Source: Ranitomeya imitator (Eukaryota). From it: a DNA stretch of 64,000 nucleotides. A program made the position numbers and the translations under genes. The notes beneath the pieces are model-generated. The model did no database searches, was not told the DNA's origin, and saw nothing but the letters and a program-made list of their open reading frames with translations. Positions 2,701 to 56,980 of the stretch are shown here, in pieces (position 1 is the stretch's first letter; every line of letters begins with the position of its first letter). Location: NCBI RefSeq assembly GCF_032444005.1, contig NC_091284.1, positions 133,982,001 through 134,046,000 on the forward strand. The letters run 5' to 3'.

Positions 2701-3399
2701 AATATATATATTATGTAGATGTAGAATTTTGAATTGACCTTTGGAAAGAAGGCTGGGTCAGTTTTAATTATTACTCTGTCCTCCAAAAAGGTAGTGTATA
2801 TGAAGTATCAATAGAGATAGCTTGAATCTCACTAATGCGTCGAGCCGACGTAAGGGCAACCAGGAGAACCGTTTTTAAGGTTAGAGTTTTTTCTGAGATG
2901 GAGTGAAGAGGCTCAAAAGGAGGAGAGGTTAAGGCCTGGCGCACTAAATTTAGATCCCAGGGAGCTACCTTTGGAGGAGGTTTAAATGGTCTGGCTGTAA
3001 AGGAGGCTCGGATGAACCTATACACCCAGGGGTGATCAGCCAATTTTTGATCAAATATGGCGCCAAGCGCCGAACCTGCACCTTTAAGGTGCTGGTAGAT
3101 AAACCCCGTTCCAACCCTTTTTGGAGGAACTCCAAGACTTCACTTATTGGGACTTTATGAGTGGTACTTGACAGGCGTCATCCTGAAAACTCTAGAAATT
3201 ATTGCCAGATTTTCTGATATTTATCGGATGTAATTTTTTTCCTGCTGGATAGCAGAGTCGCAATTAACGGAGCTGAAAATCCCTTTGCTAGCAGAAGCCC
3301 CCTCTCAAGTTCCAGGCAGTGAGATGTAGGCTGTGTACTTGAGGATGGGATACTGGACCCTGGTGTAGTAGATTTGGAACATCTGGAAGGATCCATGGC

Positions 3400-4110
3400 T
3401 CAGATATGGACATACGTCTGAGCCAGGTGAACCATTCCCTCTTTGGCCAGAAAGGTGCGATCAGTATTATTCGTGTCCCGTCCTCTCGGATTTTTTTTCA
3501 ACACTGTTGGTATTAGCGGAATCGGGGGAAATGCGTAGGCAAGTTGGAACTTCCATTGGTGCAACAGCACATCCACTCCTTCTGTGTTCTCCCCTGGGTT
3601 CAAGGAATAGAATCTTTCTACCTTCTGGTTTTGTTTTGTGGCAAAGAGATCTACCTGTGAAATACCCCAACTGGTGCAGATTTCCCCAAATTTTTCTTGA
3701 TTTAGGGACCATTCGTTCTGGTGTAGCACGTGCCCGCTTAAGAAGTCTTCAACAAGGTTGTCCGTCCCTTTTAGGTGTGTGCTTGTCAAGGATAAGAGGT
3801 GATTTTCTGCCCAAGAAAACAGTCTTTTGGCTTCTTCTAACAGAGACCTCGACCTTGTTCCCCCTTGTCGATATATGTAAGAGACTGCTGTGCTGTTGTC
3901 GGATAGGACCACTAGGTGATTTCCTTTCACAGTCCCTTCTATTTGTAGAACTGCTTGCCTTACTGCTGTTAGTTCCTTTAGGTTGGAGGATGCCGACTCC
4001 ATTTGAGGATCCCATCTGCCTTGCAGAATCTGATCTTTTAAGTGGGCCCCCCAGCCGAGAGGGCTCGCATCAGTGGTTCGTACCACCGGATTGGGGATCG
4101 ACCATGGCAC
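3400..4110 (-). pseudogene. DIRS1 RNase H plus Dam-like methyltransferase domain remnant
   Basis: TTDAS/ELTAV/SDN/EDFLS RNase H motifs followed by VDLFAT ... AYAFPP, typical of the DIRS1 methyltransferase extension. Confidence 0.85.
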
Positions 4111-4213
4111 CCCTATTTTTAAATTCTCTAATTTGAGCCACCAATTTAAAGAGTCCTGAACTTGTGGCCATAGGGCGATTTTCCGATTTAAATTGTAGGG
4201 GTTCTTTGCCTGT

Positions 4214-5161
4214 TCAGTCAGGATTTGCCACTGTAACTCTCTTGAATGCAGTTGAGCCCATTAAACCGCCGGAATTGTGGCTGTCAACATCCCTAGAAGG
4301 GACATGGCTTCTCTTCTTATCGAGATGGACCGGGCCAATTGGGTTTGTTTTATGGCTTTGATTTTCCTGTTCGGAAGGACACACACTTGTTTGATTGAGT
4401 CCAGCTGAATTCCCAGGAATTCCTGTATCTGGTTTGGAATCTGTTTTGATTTTTTTAAATTTATTAACCATCCTAGTTTGGACAGTAGGTTCCGTACTTT
4501 TGTGACTGCCTCTATGCAGTCTTCCTGGCTGTCTGCTATAAGGAGAAAATCTTCTAAAATCGTGTACTAATGAGATGTTTTTCTTCCTTACCAACGATGC
4601 CATCTCTGAGATAATTTTTGTAAAAATTCGGGGGGCTACCGATACCCCGAAAGGGAGACACTGGTACTCTAGATGAGTGGGAATTTGATTTATTTCTACT
4701 ACCAACCTTAAACATTGTTGATGTTCTACACAAATGGGAACATGATAGTAGGCATCTGTGAGGTCTATGACTGCCATGTAACAGACTGGATATAGCAGTT
4801 TTACTGTAGTTTTTAACGTCTCCATTTTGAATTTTTCTACTCGGATATATTGATTTTGGGATTTTAAGTTGAAGATAGTTCTTAGTGAACCATCCGCCTC
4901 TGGTGTGGGAAACAGGGTACTGTAAAACCATTTCCCTATCTCTTGTGCAGGTACTTTTATAAGGACTTGTTTTTCCATGAGGAGATGAACTTCCTTTTCT
5001 AGCATCACCTGGTTTCTTTTTGCCACATGGGTGATTTTTACTCGATGAGGAGGGAGGGAGGTGAATTTCAGCTGTAGGCCTTCTGATAATAGGGTCATTA
5101 CCCATTGTGAGACTTGTAACTTTTCCCACTGATGGACAAAGAACCGAAGCCTTCCCCCCAC
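4214..5161 (-). pseudogene. DIRS1 reverse transcriptase, frameshifted near the YxDD box
   Basis: RT motifs present up to PRIFTKII, then the frame is lost (ISLVHDF...) where YLDD is expected. Confidence 0.85.
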
Positions 5162-6901
5162 CCGGATGTCGGTGTCATTGTTGTTTGGGTCTGGTTTTTG
5201 AGGGGGTTTATTAAAGAGCTATCCTCTTTCTCTTCTGTCATTCCAGGCCTTCCCACGTGTGGACTTATCCCCTGGCCGACCCCGGCCGGCTTTTCCAGGA
5301 CCCCGAAAGGAACGCCAGGTATCATTCCAACGGCGTCTTGAGAAGGGGGGAGGAGGGAAGTGTTTTTTCTTTTAATTAGATTTAATACATTCTCGTGGAA
5401 AGGGAAAGCTCTCCGTTTTTTTCCCTCTAGATTACTAAACATAGAGTCTTGGGTTGTTTTATGTTCTTTTGGTGTTTCGACCTCCAAAGTGGATCTAACT
5501 AGTTTTAGTAGTTTCCCCACGTCTTCAGATAATACATACGGTCGACCACACTCTTCGTCTGAAGAGTCTAAATCGGAGTCATCACCAGGTGGTAATTCCT
5601 CCGGTTCACCTTCTGATTGCACGTCAGAGTTTTGGGCAGGTCTAGGGGGTGGATTTTCAGAGCTATGTAACCCATGATGTTTCATCTGCACTTTTACTGT
5701 GATTTTAACTTGATCCCTAACGATACTGTAGCTTTTATGTTTTGGAGCAATGATGAGGATTCCTCGGCCACGGTTTTATCTATGCATAGCCGTCAAATCT
5801 GCTTCTCATAAGTTCTAGAAAGCGCTTTATTACAGAGTGCACACACTTTGTTTTTCTGTTTGGCCGTAGCTTTCTTTCCCTGCATAACATGATACAGAAA
5901 GACACTGTTACTGACGTGTTTTGCCTTACAAAGGCACTCACCCACCAGAACCTCAATACAATGGGAGTCTGTGGGATGTCCACCAGAATCGGCGGGTCCG
6001 CCATTGTCAGAGAAGCTAATGCCACAGTTACTTGTGCAGTGCTTCTTTAAATATTATAGAGTGAGAGCGGTGTGAGCGTCCCTGAACATTCTCCCCCTGG
6101 GAGTGTCAGCACACCACTCTCCCCGGCGTGCGACGTCACTTCCGGTCTGAACCGGAAGTCGTTCCATTCACCTTGGCGCCAGCTTAGTGATGGGCACGCC
6201 CCCTACCCCGGCCCAGCCTCCGGCCAGGAGCGGACGCCGGAGAGCCCGCAGCGAGACGCATGCCATCCAACAGCTATGTGCTCTGTGAGTAATGCCGCAC
6301 ATTGCTCCCCCTGTGCGCCGACCAGCTGTTCCCGCCGCGGACCTCGGTCTCCAGACCGGCACGGCCCAAGAGAGAACCCTCCGGCATCGCAGGCTCCCCG
6401 CAGGAAGAGGAAACCGAACTGAGGAGAGAAGTGCCTCCCCCATCTTTTATCTCCTCTGCAGGTTTCCTGTTCCTGGGGGCTGGGACCATTTCTCATGTAT
6501 AGGTGCTGTCATGGGGAAGGGAAAAAATAGGCAGCATGTGCATGAGATTTAAGAAATCCCATTCACTTTGCCGGTGTAACGTGGCGTGGGCCAGTAGCCA
6601 TGGGCGAGGTACTTGTGTCTTACGCCCCTGCACGCTACATTAAGGTGGGTGTCCTGGCTGGGCGGGTAGACTTGTGCTGTGAGGGCGCTACGCCGGTTAA
6701 AGCCACATGTCACCGATGTTGCTGGTTTGCCAGGCCAGGTGTTGGACAATTCAATGTGGGAGAGCACCATTTAAAAATAAACTTTGTACTCAACGGTATC
6801 TTGGTAGGGAATGTATACAAGAGATAGTGAGTACACAGTCTTATGAACGTTTCCTTTACAACTAGCAGCATTTTCTACACCGTTTCCTTCTTTCTTCTCT
6901 C

Positions 6902-9859: not shown

Positions 9860-11012
9860 CAGCTGACATGTGCCCGCTACAGCCGTGGGTGGAATCGCGA
9901 TCCACTTGCGGCTGTTAACTAGTTAAATGTCGCTATCAATCTCCGACAGCGTTATTTAACTCGCGCTTACCAGAAGCGCGTCCTTTATCCCACTAATCAG
10001 TGACCCCATCACATGATCGCAGGTCACCAATGGGTCGGTATGGCAACCAGAGGTCTCCTGCAGACCTCTATGGTTGCCATAGCCAGATTGCTATGAGCAC
10101 CGCCAGGTGATCAGCACTCATAACAAGTGAGCATTTCTGCTACACACAGGCGATCTGATCATCACCTGGATGTAGCACAAGCGGTTAGACAACTGCAGCT
10201 TCTAGTCTCCAATGGAGACTATTGAAGCATGTAAAGTTTAAAAAAAAAAAGTTTTTAAAAATCTAAAAAAAAAATAAAAAAAAGTTATAATCACCCCCGT
10301 CGCCCCATTCAAAACAATAATAATAATAAAAAATATATACACATATTCCGTTTTACCATATAGTGAACATGGTATATATAAAAACAAAAAAACAAAAAAA
10401 AACCCACAACTGTGGAGTTGCACTTTTATTTTTGCAATTTCACCACACTTTGAATTTTTGTTTCTGGTTTTCCAGTACAGAACATGTTAAAACCAATGGT
10501 GTAGTTCAAGGAAACATCTTGTCCTGCAAAAAACAAGCCCTCACATGGCCATCCAGTAGTTTGAGAAAACAGATAGACCGCACCACCGCCTATTAATCTT
10601 AGTGGAAACTGCTCACCTGCGGTGGAAGTCAGATCTCGGGTGCTGTGTCAGACCTCCATGTAGACTTGTTCATTTGCAAAGAAGAAAGAGGCAGCACTCG
10701 CCGATCATCCGAGACAGGTAAGTTTATTCACACACGGTAAAAATCTTCACGGCCGGGGGTGCTGTACAATGAGAACAATCAGGCTTGCCGCTCTCATTGT
10801 ACAGCACCCCCGGCCGTGAAGATTTTTACCGTGTGTGAATAAACTTACCTGTCTCGGATGATCGGTGAGTGTTGCCTCTTTCTTCTTTGCAAATGAACAC
10901 CTCACATGGTCATATTGACCGAAAAAAAAAAAAAAAAAACTTATGGCTCTGAGAAGGAGGGGAGCAAAAAACGAAAGCGCAAGAAACTGAAATACACTTG
11001 GTCGTTAAGGGG
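9860..11012. mobile_element. Fragment of large TTAA-type (piggyBac-like, CCCCTT terminus) non-autonomous repeat
   Basis: Ends TGGTCGTTAAGGGG|ttag; reverse complement of the copy at 55829-56980 (shared CAAGCCCTCACATGGCC, TTATGGCTCTG, CAGCTGACATGTGCCCG). Confidence 0.65.
10553..10899 (-). mobile_element. Penelope-like element remnant (inverted pseudo-LTR pair plus tail) with 14-bp TSD
   Basis: 108-bp arms 10667-10774 and 10792-10899 (2 mismatches, 17-nt loop) containing GGTGAGTGTTGCC. Flanked by CCTCACATGG(C/T)CAT at 10539-10552 and 10900-10913, which restores the host repeat. Confidence 0.7.
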
Positions 11013-11921
11013 TTAGTAAAGATTGTAACCTCAAAAGAAAAAAAAACATTGTAAAAACAAACAATAAAAGAAAAGACAAACAAGAGGTCATTTTCTGATA
11101 ATACATTCTCTTAAAATTAGTCAGTCTACTCCATATGTGACTATTGATAGGCAGGGTCCAGAAATCCTCCTTTGCATCAGGTGTGTAGTCAGCGAATATC
11201 TACGTGGGATCTCCGTGTTCTGGCACGCACCATAGAATCTCATAACTGGTGACACGTGGTAATGACCCACCATCAATGCAGGATGTTTCCAGAGTGCAGA
11301 ACACGATATAAAGAGCACAATATAATACAATTGCTTTACAGAAATGTGATATCTCAGCCTGCAGAACCTGAAACACCAAATCTGCAACCACCTGAAACCT
11401 GGGGAGCAGAACTGACCTATTCGATAAGTCATCCAATTAATGGAAAAAAAAAATTGTACAAAATGAAGACATAGGAGGTTCGGTACAATTTCTAGGTCAC
11501 TATTCAAAGAACATTTGTCGAATTGAGAAATGATCAGACAACAGTTGATTAATTATCATTGCATTTAACGGTTGACTTCGAATAATGACTTTACACGTAA
11601 GGGCAACTCGAAACCTGTGTGAAAGCAACTTATCTTCAAGCCTTCCTGTAAGAAACTAATAAATGCTAGGTGATCGGAAAGTTGTGTGATCTCTTATCTG
11701 TTTGACAAATATCTGATTGTGTATGTGCAGATTGGGATGACTCATGTCTACTGTAATCATCATCTAATGGCAGCTGTTGAAACCTTGGACTACGGCATAA
11801 TTGATACCAAGATCTTCTAAAAGTCTAAATTATACGCTGATCTGGCACAAGTGTCAAAAGCCACACGACCTGCAGTGATGAATGAATCAGTGCAGAAGTG
11901 TGCAGGAACACAGAAGTATTA

Positions 11922-19724: not shown

Positions 19725-21169
19725 TAACGCTTTCACCACCTTGGTATTTTTTGATTTTTTGCTCCCTTTCTTCCCAGAGCCATAACTTTTTATTGCTTCA
19801 TCTGTATGAGGGGCGTGTTTTTTTTTTTAAAGTTGTACTTTTGAACGACACCATTGATTTTACCATGTAGTGTACTGGAAAAGGGCTGGGGGGGGGGGGG
19901 GGACTCCATGCGAGGTGAAATTGCAAAAAAAAAAATGCAATTCCACAATTATTTATTTTTTTTAACCATGTACACTAAATGATAAAACTCACCTGCCATT
20001 ATGATTCTCCAGGTCCTTACAAGTTCACACATACTAAGCATGTATAGGTACTTCCATTTTTCAGGGTCTGGGAATTGGTGACGGCTTATTTCTTTAGTGA
20101 TGTTTTTATTGATACCATTTTGGGGTAGATAAATTATTTTGATCACCTGTTATTGCATTTTATTGCAATATTGCGGCAGCCAACAAAAACGTAATTCTGG
20201 AGTTTTGATCTTTTTTCGCGTTATGCCGTTTACCGATCAGATTAACTATTTTCATATTTTGACAGATTGGGCGTTTCTGAACGATTCTTGCATAACCGCC
20301 CTGTGAAGAGGTCCTGGATCCTGAGTGATGGACAGTGTGAGATGTGAGAGCAGCGCCAGCACTGCTTCTATCTCTACCACCGCCATAGTTTCCAACTGAA
20401 AGACAACATCAAGAGGAAGAAATAGAACCAGTCATTGACATCAGAGTCACCAAACAGCTTTTAGCCGCGCCCTCAAACGAATAGTCATTAGACGGCGGCG
20501 CTGGTGTCACTGTCTGCTTCTTTCACCGCCCCCTGCTAACAATTCATTTTTGGGCAGTGCTAAAAGCTGTGAGATGGCTCCCTTGTCACTTACTGCTTCT
20601 ATTTCCTATCTTGACGCATCTTCTTTCATTGAAGCTACAGCAGTGGCGGAGATAGAAACAAAGTGTCAGCGCTGCACTTACATCTCCCAGGATCCAGGAC
20701 GCCTTTAGAGGGGCAGTGATGCAAGAAACTAGTAACTGCAGTGCTGTTGCCTGTGATGCCCTGTTCTAGGAGGGGCAATGGACGAAGCACGGAGTGAGTG
20801 CAGTCCCAACCTCCTGTGACGTTACGTTTGAGAGACCTCTAAAACGAAATGTGACAGCAAGTTCAATTAAAAAAAAAAAACACATTTAAAAATTAACTAG
20901 ACAGGGAGAAGATTTATTGTGTAATAAAGTAAATTACAAAAGTGGTTAAGGTGTAAGGTTAGATATGTAGAAAATAAACTTTAAGTGCAGGACTACCCCT
21001 TTAAAAACCCAATCGTGAAACATATATTTGAATCAACATATTTGTGCAAAGCAAGTGAAAGAATAGAGAACATAAAGTACCAAAAAAAAGCATCTAAAAT
21101 GTAGCAAGATGCAATAAAACTAACAAACAGCATGAGAAACGGTTATAAATTCAGCACCGCGTCTGACTA

Positions 21170-43960: not shown

Positions 43961-46099
43961 CAACCGATCATAACATAAGTACAATGGAGTAATATGAAAG
44001 TTTGAAGAAAAGAAAAAGAATTCTGTATTATTGTAGATACAAAAGGGATGTTAATTTACCGGGTAAAAAAAAAAGAAATCTACAAAGTAACAAAAAACAC
44101 ATGAATTACGAGCGGGTTTACCAAAGCGTTTGCTGTTAAAATAGTTGTCTGACTTATGAAAACTTTTTCAGTGAGGGATGTTTTAAAACAATAAATGAAG
44201 ACATACTCATCCTCTAAGGCTGCCGTCACACTAGCAGTGTTTGGTCAGTATTTTACATCAGTATTTGTAAGCCATAGCGGAAGCCTGGGATTGGCTGCAA
44301 AAGTCAGGTGACTAGGATAGCCCCACGTCACGTAATTCAAGCTGTAGTCCATCCTAGACACGTGTCAGGATGGACTGCAGTTGGAAGAAAGTGCTTCCGA
44401 GACCTGTGTCTCAACTGACAAAGGAGCTGTATTGTTAGTTGACTCATCAGAGCTGGCAGAGAAGTATGTGACTGAAGAAATAAATCTTCTCCTCTGCAAA
44501 CTGTGCAATGAGGACTGAGACTGGAGAAAAAAAATTATTTGCGCTCAATCAGCCGAGGAGAAAATATATTTCTCCTGATGTCACAGACCTTCTCCTTGGC
44601 TCACGGCAGTATGTGTGCTTATGATACTGGTCTTCTGTCAGTTTAGACAAAGGCATCGAGAACTGTGTTTCTTCAGACTGTAGCCCATCCTGACCTAAGA
44701 CTAGGACGGGCTGCTGTTTGTATTACGTTACGAGGAAAACTTTATTACATTCTTGGAGAACCCATTTAACCTCTCCAGTGAACACCGTAAACAAAACAGA
44801 CAACAGAGCAAAAATGCTGTTTTTTCATCTTACTGCCACAGAAAAAGAGTAACTTAAAGGAGATTAAAAAGTTATATGTAAATAAAATGATATGATAGAA
44901 TAAATTATACTACTGAAAGAGTCAACTTGTCTAGCAAAAAAACAAGACCTCACTTGTCTGTTGATGGAAAAATATAAAACAGCAGCATCATTCAAAATAT
45001 GGAGAAAATAAGTGATTTTTGTAAAATAAGGATTTTTGTGTACTTGTGAGCCATTCATTGGGGGGACACAGACCGCGGGTGTATGCTGCTGCCAATAGGA
45101 GGCTGACACTAAGTGATACAAAAAAAGTTAGCTCCTCCTCTGCAGTATACACCTTCCTGCTGGCTCTCAGCTAACCAGTTCGGTGCCAAAGCAGTAGGAG
45201 ATCAATAACATAAAAGTATAGCATGTCAAACTATAAAACAAGCACAAGCTAATAACAGGTTGGGAGCTGTGTCCTCCAATGAATGGCTCGGAGAAAAGGA
45301 TTTTACAGTGAGTACACAAAAATCCCTCTTTCTCCTTCGCCTCATTGGGGGACACAGATCGTGGGACGTCCCAAAGCAGTCACTGGGTGGGTACAACATC
45401 AGATCAGGCCCTGTGTAACTACTACTTACAACAGCGCTACCGCGGCCTGCAGAGTCCGCCTGCCCAGACTCATATCTGTGGAAGTCTTGGAATTATAGTG
45501 CTTCAAGACTGCATGCGGACTGGACGAACCCGCAAGCTTGCAGGCGTGCTTTATCGACGCCTGGTACCTAGAGCCCAAGACAACCTCGATCGACAGAGTG
45601 GAGTGGAGTTAGGCTGACGTCTAACCCGAAGGACTCCTGGATGGTGTAAAGAATCCACCAGGCTACCATGGCCGATGAAATGGCTAAACCCTTCCTGTAA
45701 CCATCAGGAAGCCTTCCTCTGACCGTCAGGAAGTCCAAATAAGGTGTCCAACCTTCGGAAGGACGCCGTGCATGATACGTACCTACACAGAGCACTCACT
45801 TCGTCCAGAATATGGAGAACCCATCCCGTTTTGTGGACTGGTGCCGAAAAAGATAAGAGAAGAACGATGCCCTTGTAACATTGGGAATACAGTACCACCA
45901 AGGTAACAAGGGACGGGGATGGCCTGAGGACAACTTTGCCTTGATGGTAATAAGGAAAAAAGTCTGAAAGAACAGAGCGTCTAGCTCCAAAGACTTGTCA
46001 GGATGACGAGACCGCAGAGAAAAAAAAAAAGGGGCGACCTTCCCTGATAGTAAAGTCTGTCCGGATCAAAAAAGGAGTCTACTACAAGACTCCCAGGAT

Positions 46100-46420
46100 C
46101 ATTTTTTTTCCCTCTCTATCGGGCATGCGCAGTTTGCACTGCCCTTCTAATTTACAGCGCAGGCGCCGGGGACATTCATGAAAAAAATGGAGGCGGCGCA
46201 CGGAAGTCCTGAGTGATGGCAGGGAGGCATTCATGTCAGGGGGGAAAGACATGCCCCCCTGATAAATTAGAGGTATAAGGGACAAATTATAAAAACGATT
46301 ATTTCAGCGTTGGTAGGGACACCGACTAAAAGAGCCACCTTGACAAAGTGCAGCATTAGTGCAGCACAAGGTGGCTCCTACAGTTAAAAACGCCTGTGGG
46401 GGTGACAGGTTTCCTTTAAA
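46100..46420. mobile_element. T2/Kolobok-like MITE half inserted in DIRS-B YR region
   Basis: Ends GGGGGTGACAGGTTTCCT|TTAA, like the 1916 terminus; left boundary approximate. Confidence 0.6.
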
Positions 46421-49270
46421 GTCCTAAAGTTCTAATGGTATGTGGAAGGGGAAGGACCACATGTGAAAATTCCCTGCGAGAAAGTCCCTACTTGCAGTTT
46501 TGTTGCAATAAGATGGAAAAGTACTAGCTCCGCAAACAAAAAACTAAACGTGGTCCGTGCGGATCTCCCAGGACCACAGGGGCCCTTCCTGTTTCCTAAC
46601 GACTCTCGGAAGTAGGGGAAGGGGGGTTATGGAAACTGGTACCCCGGAAGAATCAGAGCATTTACTGCAAGGGCTTTTGGATCTTGAGGCCAAACCATGA
46701 ACACGAGTACATTGGCGTTCAGTTTGGACGCCATCCGATCTACATCTGTAGTGCCCCAGTGAAGGCAGATCTGATGGAAGACTTCTGGGTGAAGTTCCCA
46801 CACACTTGAGGTGGGACCCTGATGGCTGAAGAAGTCTACCGCCCAGAGATGTACTCCTGGGATGTGTACTGCAGAGATCACTGAATGAAAGATCTTGGCC
46901 CATCAGAGAATGAGGTACCTTATCCATGATGTCTGACCGTGGGAACCTGCTAGAGGATTGACGTATGGCATAGCCGTGGCATTATCTAATTGAATTCAGA
47001 TGGGGTGACCTGCCAGAAGGCAGAGGACCTGCTGTAGGACTAACCGGATCGTTCGGATCCCCAAAACAAAGATCGGGAGAAGAAGGCTGGCATCGGTAGT
47101 CACTAATAATCATTGAACTGGAAGGAACTCCCCTGGATGAGGAAGAAGCTCAGAGACTACCCTCTGAATGCCTGATTGACCTACAGAAAACGAGTGGAGC
47201 GAAGGAAACAGCTTCCATTGCAGTCACCATTTTTTTTCCTCATGACCCTCCCAGCAAATCTAATGGAATGAGCGATCAAGTAAGTGAGTTCTGAGTTGAA
47301 GGGCCACGGCCTTGTCTCAAGGGAGAAATACCAACCCTCTAGAAGTGTTCAGAATCATCCTCAAAAAGAATATCTGCTGGGCTGGAAAAGAGGAAAAAAC
47401 CTGTCTAGATGAAGCTGCCAGCCCAGGAGAGGGTATAGCAATTGATGTAGACGACTCAGCGTAGTCCTGGAAGAGCGGCTAGAAAGTCCACCGTATAGGG
47501 CAGGACGACCACGCCTCTGGGGTGCAAGAGGAACAAGATGGCCGCCATAACCCTTGCAAACACTCAGGTGCGGTAGCAAGACTGAAGGCAAGGTCGTGAC
47601 TTGAAAATGCTGTTTGCAAATGGAAAAGTGAAGGAATTTCTGAAGAGGGGAAAATAGGAATGTGAAGGTAAGCAACCCGAATGTCGGTGGATTCCAGAAA
47701 CTCCACCCTTTTTCCGTTGAGGTAATGGCTGAGCGGAGGAACTCCATCCGAAGAAGGACCTTGTCCAGCTTGGTAAAAGTTTGAGGTCCAGGATCGGTAT
47801 TACTTTTCGGCCCCCCCTTTTGGAACCAAGATCCCTTAGATCTAGACCGTCCCGGACAATTCTTCCACTGCTGGTTGGGTCTATAAGACACATGCGATCC
47901 TAGGGAGTGATGTTAGAGGCTTTTTGAACGCAGAGTACGCTTCCATACTCTGAGCTATAATGCCCTTCTGGGTGTAATGGCATTTGCTGATGACAGCGCC
48001 GCTCAACTAGCTGCATCCAAGAGGCGTAAACCAGCTAGTCTCTCGCTCAAGAAATTTGATTGACCAGCTGTACTGTCTTCGGGAAAAGGTTACTGATGTG
48101 AATCAAAGTAGTTATGGTATCCGACCAGGAGACCATTGCTCTAGCAACCCATGCGGTGGCCAAGGAAGGGTAGAGCACTCAACCCGAGGCTGCAAGACGA
48201 AACGAACCAGATTTGCTATCTGACAGTCTGTTGTAATTTTAATTGATGACCCATCGGGCAGGAATACTGGTAGACAAACCACAGGAGATTCTACCCGGAT
48301 AATCTGCCAAGTGGCAGAATGCGCGGCTGCATCCAGGTCAGGAAAAGCCGTCTCTTGCTACCTCCGCTCTCTTTTGACAGTGCGGAGTTAAAATGATGAA
48401 CCCTCGATCCACCACCCTCTTAAAAAGGGAAGTGGAGCGGGATTGTCCACCTTCTTGCATCATTCGCTAAATAGTAGAGATGCAGAAAGGGGTGCTCGGA
48501 CGCCAAAAAAGGGTGACACTGTACATCCATCAAGTTCAGGTCACCGGGAGGACAGGGTTGGTTCCGGTGTTAGGCCTGGCTGCAGAAGAGTATACATGGA
48601 GACGACACTCCATGTGCTCGTCTATTGATGGTGTGGGGAGATCGGTGCACTTTAAAAGGACCCGTCGCCCCTAAGAAACAGACCAGGCATGGCATCCCAC
48701 GTCGTAGGGTGGTATAATTGAAGGGGACACCCCACGTGTTTGCATATTGCTTATCCGGACGCTCCCTGTCCGGGTGAATGACAAATGCTTTGCAAGGGAG
48801 TTTAGTCGCCTTATGAGGGACACTGCGTGATCTAGAGTGGACCCATAGCCCTCATCAATCTACAGAGATTGGTTGATGATATAAATAGGTGAACCCATCC
48901 CCTTCTGAAGTTCTGGCGAGTCCAGATCCAAGGCAATATCCAATCCATATTCAGAGTCTTGTTCTCAGCAATCATTGGTGAGGGAGATCAGGAAATGAAG
49001 CTTCCATTTTCTATAAGCCTGTACGTTTCTAGAATACTTGCGGCCCCTGCTAGCCAACAGCTCCCATATAGGAGAGGAACCATATATATCACTCCTGCGA
49101 GCACTCCGAGCCACAGAGTGCTCCGAGTTCATGGAGGGCTTCAATCTCTTGATCAGAGAAGCCATGGGATGTGGCAGTGATTAATCCCACTCAGGGGAAC
49201 TAGGTACTCTGGAATAAGCTGGGATCGGTGGCGGAGGGTTCCAGAGTTCATTTAGGGTGACCGGCTTTGG

Positions 49271-49360
49271 ACTGGTCATGTGCCCTTAAGACAAGGGAAT
49301 ACTGGTCATGTGCCTTTAAGACCAGGGAATGCTAGTCATGTGCCTCTAAGACTGGGGACT
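49271..49360. repeat. 30-bp tandem repeat x3 within DIRS-B
   Basis: ACTGGTCATGTGCC(C/T)TTAAGAC(A/C)AGGGAAT units. Confidence 0.85.
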
Positions 49361-49462
49361 AATATGGGTCATTCATGTAAGTACAGGAGGGAAGAGGGCA
49401 GTACTTCCTTACCAGGCTGCAGTCGTTGAGCTCCTTTAATGCAAAAAACATCGCCTCTGCCG

Positions 49463-49534
49463 GGAGAGAGAGAAAGAGAAAGAGAAAGAGAAAGAGAGAG
49501 AGAAAGAGAAAGAGAGAGAGAGAAAGAAAGAGAG
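49463..49534. repeat. (GAGAAA)n/(GA)n microsatellite
   Basis: Direct reading. Confidence 0.9.
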
Positions 49535-51321
49535 ACCATTTAGGGGGCAGAGCCACAGACACAATATGGGCGGAGCCTCGCGACTTCCATGAATAGGCCC
49601 AAGACAGGGCCTAAATTTCTGCAGCTGGCAAGAGCAATACCAGGGGTAGAATAGAAGGGCATTGGGCCGGGAAAACCGAACGCTCCCATGCCAGACAGAA
49701 AACCCCAAAAAGGATGGGCGGAGCCGCCTTAACGTGCCATAGTGCGGGCGCGACTTCTGGGATGCGGCCTACACATCGGCCGAAGCCGGGAGCTAAATTT
49801 TTGCAGCCGGCCGGAGCATTACCTTATGGAGGTGGGCAACAGGGAAGCCATGTTATTATCCTACTGCAGGGGCCCATCGCCTACTGGATCCACTCACCAT
49901 TGGTGCGCGTTCCGGCATGGAGCCGACCACGGATGACTGGGATTCAGCGCCAAGGAAAGTGCGCACTGTGCTGTTCTGCTGCAGGTTAGGTATTGCAGCG
50001 TGGACAGTGCAGGGATAAAGCAATAACCCTCAATCCATCATAACTCTTGTTAGGGAGGTGGAGAGGAACCGTCCGCCTCCTTGGGCCATCCGCTTTAACA
50101 GTGGTGGTACAGTAGGGGCTGCTCGGACGCCAAAAAGAAGGAGCCTCTGTAAATCCACAGACTTCAAGGATCCGGGTGGGCTGGGCAAGTTGTCTGGCAA
50201 TAGGCCTGGCTCCAGGAGAGGATACATAGAGGCAACACTCCATGTGCTCTCTCGTTGCTGGTGTGGAGAGATCGGGACCCGAAGGAACAGTCGCCCCTAA
50301 AGTGAGCTCAGGCACGGCTTCCCACGTCGCAGGAGAGGGTACAGGGAGGTGACACTCCGTGTTCTCACCTGTTGATGGTTCGGGGGAGATCGGAACCTTG
50401 AAAGGATCTGTCGCCCCCTTCACTCCGTTAATAAACATTTAAAAAAAATTTTTTTTACAGAAAAGTAAAAAATAAAATAAAAACGATGGGGTCTGAACCA
50501 GACCAAAGTGCCTCGGCCTCCTACAGACACTAAGCAAGAACTGGTTAGCAGAGAGCCAGCAGGAGGGTGTATACTGCAGGGGAGGAGCTGAGAGCCAGCA
50601 GGAGGGTGTATACTGCAGAGGAGGAGCTAATTTTTTTTGTATCACTTAGTGTCAGCCTCCTAATGGCAGCAGCATACACCCACGGTCTGTGTCCCCCAAT
50701 GAATGGCTCGGAGAAAAGGATTTTACGGTGAGTACACAAACATCCCTATTTTACAAAAATCACTTATTTTCTCCATATTCTGAATGATATTGCTTTTTTT
50801 TATTCTTCCATCAACAGAGACAAGTGAGGTCTTGTTTTTTTGCTAGACAAGTTGACTCTTTCAGTAGTATAATTTATTCTATCATATCACTGTGTCCCCC
50901 AATGAGGCGAAGGAGAAATATGTTAATTAGTGAGCAAAATAAGCAAAACATTAAAAAATCCTACATAAATCGGTTATCATTGTAATGGTACTGAACCAAA
51001 AGACTAACCACACATTGAACGGCATACAAAAAATAAAATAAAAACAATTCATGAATTGCTATTCTTGCTCATTCTACCTGACAAACTAAGAAAGAAAAGC
51101 AATCGAAAAATGTTTTGTTCCCCAAAATGGTACTCAAAAAATCGTCAACTGGAAATTTACAAATCTAGAATGTTGCCTCAATTTAAATTAAGAGTTTGGA
51201 AACTATTTGGCACAATATTATCAAAACTAATTGTACTATGTGGCTATGTATTAGTTAACCTTGAGGTAGGAAGATGTGCTACACAGAAAATACCATATAT
51301 ATGGGGAAATTATATACTCAC

Positions 51322-51412
51322 ATTCTGAACAGAATCATTTTTGTCCGGCTCATCAAGGCTTTGCAGATCAAACAGCACTAAGCCATGAGGATAGATTCTC
51401 ACAGTTGCAAAA
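51322..51412 (-). CDS. SMS: Spermine synthase internal exon (orthologue of human exon 3), 91 nt
   Basis: Minus strand: ttttctctttcAG|T TTT GCA ACT GTG AGA ATC TAT CCT CAT GGC ... CAG AAT|GTGAGT, translating FATVRIYPHGLVLFDLQSLDEPDKNDSVQN; matches recalled vertebrate SMS FANLRIYPHGLVLLDLQS. Ends on a codon boundary, in phase with the next exon. Confidence 0.93.
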
Positions 51413-51791
51413 CTGAAAGAGAAAATACAGAGAAATATATGGCAGCATTATTCACAGATATCGTGTTTAACACAACGCGCCATCCTACGACCCTTTAGCA
51501 CAATGGTAATATCAAAGCAGACTCTAAAAAGAGAGCAATGGCTGTAAAGTCTACAATATTTTCTAGGCTTTGGTTACAATTACTCAATGCCAGCAGGCTG
51601 CTGACAAAGCACAATGCTTTTTTGTTCTGTGCATTTCAAACCTCTGTGTAATTCTACTGGAGGCCAATGTCACATGACTATTAGATATTAAGGAAATTTG
51701 CTTAGTAAAAACAAAAATGAATCCAGTTAAAACATCACAATACTCGCACGTTGTGAAAGATTCCCAGCCTTGTGACTACACTATAGACTAT

Positions 51792-55335: not shown

Positions 55336-55828
55336 TGAGGATAACATTGGACTGTTCTGAAGTGGCCTTCTATGAACCCTGACCTAAATCCTATTGAGCA
55401 TCTTTGAAGGTTGCCTTCTCCAGATGGCATGTTTCAGCTCTTTCCAAACACAAGACAACTGGAGCAGTTTGCTCTTGAGGAGTGGGCAAAAATACCTGTC
55501 AAGAGGTGCAGAAGTCTCATTGACAGTTACAGGAATAATTTAATTGCAGTGATTGCCTCAAAAGGTTGTGCAACAAAATATTAAGTTAAGGGTACCATCA
55601 TTTCTGTCCAGGCCTATTTCATGAGGTTTATTTATTTTTTTATTCTGTGGAAGCATGGTTGAAAAGCAATGTCTGACTTTCATTTGTTCATTTTCAGAGT
55701 TTTTTTTATTTATTATTACTTTTGTCAGATTCAAGTTATTTCTTTGACCATTGTGCGGTTTTCTGTCATTAAACGAGGGGTACCAACAATTTTGACCATG
55801 TGTGTAACAGTTTTAATAGCAATTTTAA

Positions 55829-56980
55829 CCCCTTCAAGACCTTGCTTTTTTCAGTTTTTGCGTTCTCGTTTTTTCGCGCCCCTCCTTCCCAGAGCCATAA
55901 GTTGTTTTTTTTTCCGGCAATACGGCCATGTGAGGGCTTGTTTTTTGTGGAACGAGTTGTACTTTTGAACGATTCCATTAGTTTTACCATATCATGTACT
56001 GGAGAACAGAAAATAAATTCAAAGTGTAGTGAAATTGCAAAAAATTGCAATCCCACACTTGTTTTTTGTTTATCTTTTTTGCTCGGTTCACTAATGCTAA
56101 AACTGACCTGCATTATGATTCTTTCGAGTTCATAGACACCAAACATGTCTAGGTTACGTTTTATGTAAGTGGTAAAAAAAAATTCCAAACTTTGCTAAAA
56201 AAAAATTTTTTTTACCCAATAGCCGTAGCGTCTCTATTTTTTGTAATCTCGGGTTGAGTGAGGCCTTATTTTTTGCGTGCCAAGCTGACGTTTTTAATGA
56301 TACCATTTTGGTGCAGATACGTTCTTTTGATCGCCCGTTAATGCAGTTTAATGCAATGTCGCGGCGACAAAAAAAAAGTTATTCTGGCGTTTCAATTTTT
56401 TTTCCTCGCTACGCTGTTTAGCGATCAGGTTAATGCTTCTTTTTATTGATAGATCGGGCAATTCTGAACGCAGCGATACCAAATGTGTAGGTTTGAATTT
56501 ATTGTTTTATTTTGAATGGGGCGAAAGGGGGGTGATTTAAAAACTTAACTTTTTTTTTTTTTTTTAACTTTTGCCATGCTTCAATAGCCTCCATGGGAGG
56601 CTAGAAGCTGGCATAGCCTGATCGGCTTTGCTACATTGCAGCGATCATCAGATCGCTCTTATGTAGCTGAATTGCAGGCTTGCTATGGGCGCCGACCACA
56701 GGGTGGCGCTCACAGCAAGCCAGCATCAGTAACCATAGAGGTCTCAAGGAGACCTCTGGTTACTATACAGACGCATCGCTGACCCCCGATCATGTGACGG
56801 GGGTCGGCGATGCATTTCCGGCCACAATCGCCGGTTAAATGCCGCTGTCAGCGTTTCACAGCGGCATTTAACTAGTTAATAGCAGTGGGTGGATCGCGAG
56901 TTCACCCACCGCTATTGCGGGCACATGTCAGCTGTTCAAAACAGCTGACATGTCCCGGCTTTGATGCGGGCTCACATCAA
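55829..56980. mobile_element. Large TTAA-type (piggyBac-like) non-autonomous repeat fragment
   Basis: TTAA|CCCCTTCAAGACC terminus; inverted homologue of 9860-11012. Confidence 0.7.

Follow-up and report, generated by a model that had tools for sequence, protein, structure and literature searches.

An inverted copy of opposite-flank DNA inside the 5′ terminal repeat of a decayed DIRS1-type element in a frog genome

The DNA analyzed here, a stretch of 64,000 nt that we call the window, carries a DIRS1-type element on the minus strand between 45029 and about 50918. The segment adjoining the 3′ end of this element (X) recurs in inverted orientation (X′) within its 5′ ITR. The features are listed below with their coordinates and strand, and with the evidence for each in brackets.

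45029 to about 50918, minus strand: the whole DIRS1-type element (ITRs, ICR and RT/RNase H remnants)
44888–45028, plus strand: X, native host DNA adjoining the 3′ end of the element and source of the copy (inverted match to 50747–50889)
45029–45055, minus strand: truncated 3′ terminal extension with 18 nt missing (alignment to ICR 45282–45326 and to 50702–50746)
45056–45181, minus strand: 3′ ITR, consisting of the 16-mer CATTGGGGGGACACAG and the ITR body (96% and 94% complementary to 50538–50697)
45267–45365, minus strand: ICR, the circle junction (matches to both element termini)
45366–50537, minus strand: decayed internal region (tblastn, ORF lengths)
50538–50686, minus strand: 5′ ITR body (inverted matches to the 3′ ITR)
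50687–50701, minus strand: first copy of the 15-mer CTGTGTCCCCCAATG, continuous with the ITR body (direct reading of the sequence)
50702–50746, plus strand: full-length 45-nt 3′ extension, inverted inside the 5′ ITR (direct match to the ICR)
50747–50889, plus strand: X′, the inverted copy of the flank 44888–45028 (alignment, depth and bridging contigs)
50890–50918, minus strand: second 15-mer CTGTGTCCCCCAATG (50890–50904) and the true 5′ terminal extension (100% complementary to ICR 45329–45357)
50905–50918, plus-strand reading: AGGCGAAGGAGAAA, complement of the 5′ extension
50916–50920, no strand assigned: junction core AAATA (sense TATTT; repeated at 45025–45029, TCTTT in the ICR)

On the plus strand the ICR (45267–45357) is ordered as 15-mer, 3′ extension, TC, 5′ extension and reverse complement of the 15-mer. 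It thereby reads as a 3′ terminus followed by a 5′ terminus, and the loose ends of other copies at 50687 show this same ICR context. The two ITRs are complementary at 96% between 45061–45172 and 50586–50697 and at 94% between 45130–45181 and 50538–50589, and the ICR half 45267–45331 is a 94% direct match to 50687–50751. Together with the perfect complementarity of 50890–50918 to the other ICR half, this bears out the orientation of the element and the assignment of the ICR halves made in an earlier sequence-only reading of the window. The 15-mer CTGTGTCCCCCAATG occurs only four times in the window within two mismatches, compared to an expectation of 0.13.

Remnants of RT/RNase H were detected by tblastn at 46636–47821 (minus strand), where the element aligns to residues 702–1115 of the protein P0005, which carry RVT_1 and RT_RNaseH. 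The RT region of the element is frameshifted, its reading frames are badly broken, and its longest ORF piece does not exceed 183 aa. A Pfam search with ten ORF pieces of the element returned no match, because the element is too decayed. A recombinase-like remnant at about 45430–45850 is suggested by a weak, 40-aa tblastn match (45730–45849) to a chimeric gene model; a putative recombinase C-terminal motif, “...AGSSSPHAVLKHY”, was recognized by eye and has no profile match. With its ITRs, ICR and RT/RNase H remnants, the element is an old and decayed DIRS1-like retrotransposon. A word-indexed protein search with the 150-aa 5′ ORF for the 5′ ends of other copies gave no match, the canonical 5′ terminus had 0 exact matches among JGI metagenome contigs, and exact look-ups of the two ORFs spanning the left and right junctions gave no record.

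Several smaller rearrangements are visible within the element. Its 5′ ITR contains a 39-nt tandem duplication (50547–50624, 95% identical) that is not present in the 3′ ITR, and contig joints indicate that other family copies vary around this position. The gag-side half harbors a direct duplication of about 335–339 nt (48376–48708 and 50003–50333, 72.6% identical, 1.63 kb apart), and three 30-nt tandem units lie at 49271–49360.

A second, better-preserved RT/RNase H retroelement remnant is found at 3294–5248 (minus strand; tblastn E of about 1e-101 to the DIRS-type proteins that also align to the first element), which shares no DNA similarity with the element at 45029–50918 and has no obvious ITRs nearby. 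The window also contains an inverted repeat at 1378–1644 and 1658–1924 (267 nt, 93% complementary, arms 13 nt apart), and a MITE-like fold-back in the left flank of the element (44323–44735), which is 65% self-complementary over 428 nt and has its better arms at 44323–44390 and 44668–44735. The homologous proteins P0001, P0003, P0005, P0006 and P0010 all come from one very large assembly, GCA_958301615.1. In this assembly, the gene models P0001, P0005, P0006, P0010 and P0013 fuse host domains (PIG-S, SMN-neighbour, cytochrome b561, LAP2alpha and SH3) with pieces of DIRS RT, and P0001 translates an ITR plus 3′ extension with 92% identity to 50650–50727. These five models are likely TE-contaminated gene predictions.

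At its right end, the plus strand of the element reads ITR body, 15-mer, 45-nt 3′ extension, X′, the 15-mer again and the 5′ extension. At the left end, the order is X (44888–45028), a shortened 3′ extension (45029–45055), the 16-mer (45056–45071) and the ITR body. The whole of 50586–50889 is an inverted copy of 44888–45172, with an identity of 88.5% over a 305-nt alignment, a value that is lowered by an 18-nt gap. As the sequence-only reading had noted, the 3′ extension is full-length in the right copy and shortened at the left end, which lacks 15 + 3 nt that are kept both in the right copy and in the ICR. X′ itself (50747–50889) is 94.4% identical to the reverse complement of 44888–45028 over 143 nt, in agreement with the earlier claim that the 5′ ITR holds an inverted copy of the opposite flank; the differences amount to seven events (six substitutions and one 2-nt indel) instead of the “roughly ten” given there. 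X is present only twice in the window.

One breakpoint of the insertion lies within the ITR pair, where the copy is continuous with the ITR arm. The junction at the other side, 50889/50890, shows 0 nt of microhomology between the donor (...CATATCA/TTTTATTT) and the acceptor (...CCCACGGT/CTGTG). Divergence is equal in the two pairs of arms, with five events in 116 nt of the ITR arms and seven events in 143 nt of X/X′, suggesting that the copying event was not much younger than the insertion of the element. The differences between X and X′ are unevenly distributed: all seven events fall in the proximal 71 nt, and the distal 72 nt match throughout (Fisher p=0.006). A recent gene conversion of one arm by the other in lineage A may account for this.

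For four runs (organism A, run X1; organism B, runs X3 and X5; organism J, run X20), Logan contigs were placed on 50300–51500. Two contigs of organism B, records 23 (230 nt, 50816–51046) and 31 (151 nt, 50816–50967), lead from X′ through the 29-nt terminus into the right flank and cross both 50889/50890 and 50918/50919, and a contig of organism J, record 14 (220 nt, 50718–50925), spans the 3′ extension, X′ and the terminus. Two further contigs of organism B, records 22 and 30 (starting at 50729 and 50726, respectively, and ending at 50845), show the states of the right copy (GGT at 50727–50729, C at 50780, A at 50789, T at 50795, T at 50800 and AG at 50816–50817). All five of these records bear private substitutions, and the flank contigs of organism B are single copy and ~97% identical to the window. 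Since contigs of B and J bridge the junctions and the B flank is this similar, the inverted-copy structure is orthologous in three differently labelled organisms and older than their split.

A caveat for organism A comes from its own contigs, which would suit an assembly artefact in which the two ITRs were wrongly joined or collapsed. Record 7 (run X1, 649 nt) matches 50723–50889 without mismatch, stops before 50890 and continues with 482 nt unlike the window, and none of the A contigs listed bridges 50889/50890. This divergence probably represents a de Bruijn cross-over into the left flank via a 72-nt perfect inverted repeat, which is to be expected because the repeat is longer than the k of 31 and the path into the 29-mer, whose copy number is very high, was likely pruned. 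An artefact would also have to produce junctions bridged by independently substituted contigs in two other organisms, and the arms differ at seven sites and by an 18-nt deletion, so that they are not a collapsed duplicate. We consider this explanation highly improbable.

Even less credible is a reading of the 143 nt as a regular component of the ITR in this family or in one of its subfamilies. The ITR, the 15-mer and the 3′ extension reach summed depths of 2e5–8e5, which points to tens of thousands of copies of the DIRS family in this frog genome, and the unique right flank has a depth of 11 in organism A and 8.7 in B. At 50761–50805, the depth per position of X′ is only 14.3–27 in A, 4.8–28 in B and 5.5 in J, which corresponds to one or two copies. 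A summed depth of ~2e4 in the bins 50806–50873 would suit a family sequence, but these bins fall in an older, unrelated interspersed repeat that is also represented elsewhere in the window, which explains their depth. Moreover, at least 15 joints among those listed, aligned over 21–33 nt on their shorter side, connect 50678–50693 to 50890–50896 and skip ~202 nt. These are the canonical 5′ ends of other copies, composed of ITR body, 15-mer and 5′ extension, which means that the family is without the insert. In line with this, X′ words occur only in A, B and J, and the small runs of other species that hold DIRS words contain zero X′ words. The sequence-only reading had named two outcomes that would overturn it, an assembly artefact and a place for the segment in the family consensus ITR. 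Neither agrees with the bridging contigs and the low depth of X′, and the structure is real and peculiar to this copy.

The direction of copying depends on which of the two segments is native to its surroundings. In sense orientation, the 5′ junction of the element reads ...AACA-TATTT-CTCC, both 3′ junctions read ...ATCC(C/T)-TATTT-TAC, and the ICR reads ...ATCCC-TCTTT-CTCC. The junctions match a trinucleotide rule of integration, with a short core common to the target and the circle junction (PMC7192593). The core found here is TATTT at the junctions and TCTTT in the ICR, with no target-site duplication. TATTT at both junctions would be expected for integration by a recombinase at a target resembling the circle junction, and the shared core argues that 45029 is a canonical 3′ end and that X is target DNA. 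In its G/C content of 0.28, X resembles the flanks (0.30–0.39) and differs from the element (0.50).

The distal ~95 nt of X belong to the older interspersed repeat (family match z=11.6 compared to shuffles), diverged copies of which lie at 55826–56700, 19748–20283 and 10107–11015 of the window. Its continuity to the left of 44888 was assessed by a shuffle test and by spacing. Collinear similarity there has z=2.7, a value reached by 14 of 1000 shuffles (2.6% in an empirical test), and the motif TTT(A/T)ACC..AGTGAACA..GTA is located 111 nt upstream of the 44888 boundary, compared to 98–117 nt in three family copies. An nhmmer profile of the repeat gave marginal E-values (0.05) to the left of 44888, as well as A-rich false positives in the right flank. 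With moderate confidence, weakened by the A-rich composition, the older repeat would thus run collinearly across 44888. The core of this repeat resembles CCAGTACATGATATGGTAAAAC...GCAAAAAACAAGCCCTCACATGG; the DIRS element is integrated inside a diverged copy at 44765–44980, and the copy at 10656–10909 contains a 244-nt palindrome (92%). In the runs of A, B and J, X was not seen a third time at 88% or above. The TATTT core, the collinear repeat and the lack of a third copy all speak for the left 141 nt being native to the locus. The empty site would then read ...AAGTGATTTTTGTAAAATATGTTAATTAG..., and the copy was made in place, after integration, because the flank of a future integration site cannot sit in a retrotransposition intermediate.

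Alternatively, the whole unit 44888–50918 could be a transposed daughter carrying the flank of its parent at both ends, in which case the left X would not be local. Such an origin would explain the shared end point of both arms and the equal age of the ITR pair and the X pair. However, the TATTT cores at 45025–45029 and 50916–50920 mark canonical ends, the older repeat continues to the left of 44888 with the right spacing, a third X copy is not seen in any of the three organisms, and the junction between X′ and the 5′ extension would be no normal recombinase site. We regard a transposed daughter as very unlikely.

A DNA break or stalled fork, followed by a switch between the ITR arms and by rejoining, is the best explanation for the structure and in our view a reasonably probable one. 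The DIRS1-type element would have integrated canonically at a TATTT core, adjoining host X. We infer that the 5′ ITR subsequently suffered a DNA break or a stalled fork, at a time before the divergence of A, B and J, and that the free 3′ end paired with the other ITR arm by strand invasion or template switching. The arms share ~115–125 nt of inverted homology and lie 5.4 kb apart; since this spacer makes a simple hairpin fold-back unlikely, strand invasion is assumed. Extended outward over 203 nt, the new strand would have copied the 15-mer, the 3′ extension and then 143 nt of flank X. It would next have been released and end-joined, with no microhomology, to the opposite side of the break, whose end had been cut back as far as the 15-mer. 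This predicts a templated inverted insertion of 203 nt, of which one junction is homology-mediated and concealed by the ITR and the other (50889/50890) is blunt.

This DNA-level reading is the simplest account and needs no coincidence of breakpoints. The native flank, together with a copy confined to its own element, would point indirectly to an origin in chromosomal replication or repair. Against it stands that no intermediate is visible. The sequence-only reading had proposed a template switch between the paired ITRs, which we retain as the best explanation, deduced from the structure. It had offered two variants, of which copying at the DNA level is favored by the native X, and reverse transcription of a read-through transcript less so, as its product must return to the source copy.

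The second variant deserves a closer look. A read-through cDNA could have entered the fold-back step of DIRS replication, copied on into the flank, been finished on the ICR and replaced the 5′ end of its own source copy. In the Cappello model, as summarised in PMC7192593, the right LTR serves as the template from which the left one is restored, and the ICR then templates its completion. The plus strand of the right end indeed has the exact cDNA polarity and the order predicted for such a run-on (ITR, 15-mer, 3′ extension, flank and ICR-templated 29 nt), the family is extremely active (summed depth up to 8e5), and linear single-stranded cDNA is abundant for Dictyostelium DIRS-1 (PMC7192593). 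The equal divergence of the ITR arms and of X/X′ also agrees with a run-on; it fits an event at or soon after insertion equally well, which leaves room for an origin coupled to retrotransposition, and does not separate a DNA-level from an RT-level mechanism. However, with X native, the product would have to find its way back to one particular copy, its source, out of tens of thousands, and the jump from the end of X′ into the ICR would be homology-free, landing 8 nt inside the ITR–ICR homology. Furthermore, there is no A-tract or other RT signature at 50889/50890, and the 30 nt upstream of 44888, read in sense orientation, contain neither AAUAAA nor AUUAAA. An RT run-on is therefore an unlikely origin of the insertion, and it is doubtful, to a slightly greater degree, that the structure represents a fossil of the DIRS fold-back step that ran on into the flank, was finished on the ICR and converted its own source copy.

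Three further candidates were rejected. Target-primed insertion of the Penelope or LINE type would have to account for the repeated 15 nt as a target duplication, but these are the very 15-mer found ahead of the 3′ extension in the donor, and an RNA acting in trans would not find its own source copy. A nested or adjacent second DIRS copy still requires a duplication, as the junction between 3′ extension and flank occurs twice. Recombinase-mediated inversion yields no duplication.

The logic of two different junctions, on which the favored break-and-switch reading relies, is known for rearrangements mediated by inverted repeats. In DUP-TRP/INV-DUP rearrangements (PMC11293582, PMC4352052) and in MMBIR (PMC2621351), one homology-driven junction likewise lies inside inverted repeats, and the second forms in cis where homology is slight or absent. 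As in DUP-TRP/INV-DUP, the duplicated segment here is inverted. In contrast to those rearrangements, it measures ~200 nt and not kb to Mb, the repeats are the ITRs of one retrotransposon, no triplication is present, and the event is fixed and common to related species. Templated inverted insertions have also been described at double-strand breaks, where one end similarly invades a donor, copies past the homology and is end-joined; fold-back insertions in yeast are mostly 5–34 bp long and involve very short inverted repeats near the break (PMC11724301). Here, the donor lies 5.4 kb away and the insertion is 203 nt long. Coupled homologous and non-homologous repair was reportedly described by Richardson and Jasin in 2000.

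The closest parallel in geometry is step 1 of Cappello's model for DIRS-1, in which, as summarised in PMC7192593, a 3′ end in one arm is extended outward along the other; the arrangement is identical, and the product at our locus likewise has cDNA polarity and ends in ICR-type sequence. In the model, however, the cDNA is extrachromosomal and should never contain the flank of its own integration site, whereas the flank here is native and a return to the source would be needed. A different kind of flank capture is provided by 3′ transduction. L1 and SVA elements move flanking DNA by read-through, so that sequence downstream of the 3′ end of the element reaches a new locus in direct orientation. 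As in such transductions, flank beyond the 3′ end is duplicated; unlike them, the copy stays at the locus, is inverted, lies inside the 5′ repeat and has no poly(A). The captured flank is not found at a new locus, X runs on directly into the local flank and was observed in just two copies, and the distal end of the captured segment shows no A-tract or polyadenylation signal.

Capture of host flank inside a DIRS ITR was not described in the literature that we searched. Rather than a new means of mobilizing host DNA, the structure most likely records a DNA copying error that happened once between the two inverted repeats of the element. The class of mechanism is well known, the event is a single one in an element that is dead, and nothing points to its recurrence or mobilisation. 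The suggestion of the sequence-only reading that this is a route by which DIRS ITRs duplicate host DNA thus finds no support, as one fixed event with a familiar logic and no visible daughter copies stands behind it. A single fixed event of this kind has little consequence on its own. If the fossil reading were true, the locus would provide natural evidence for Cappello's step 1 and an example of DIRS-specific inverted duplication of host DNA; to our knowledge, nobody has yet made a direct observation of RT fold-back in DIRS replication. A DNA-repair origin and an RT fold-back origin could be told apart by how the distal breakpoints of captures are distributed. More generally, the locus shows that small inverted duplications can arise on the long inverted repeats of DIRS elements and draw neighbouring host DNA into the element, and if such captures are frequent genome-wide, DIRS ITRs would be a measurable source of local structural mutation.
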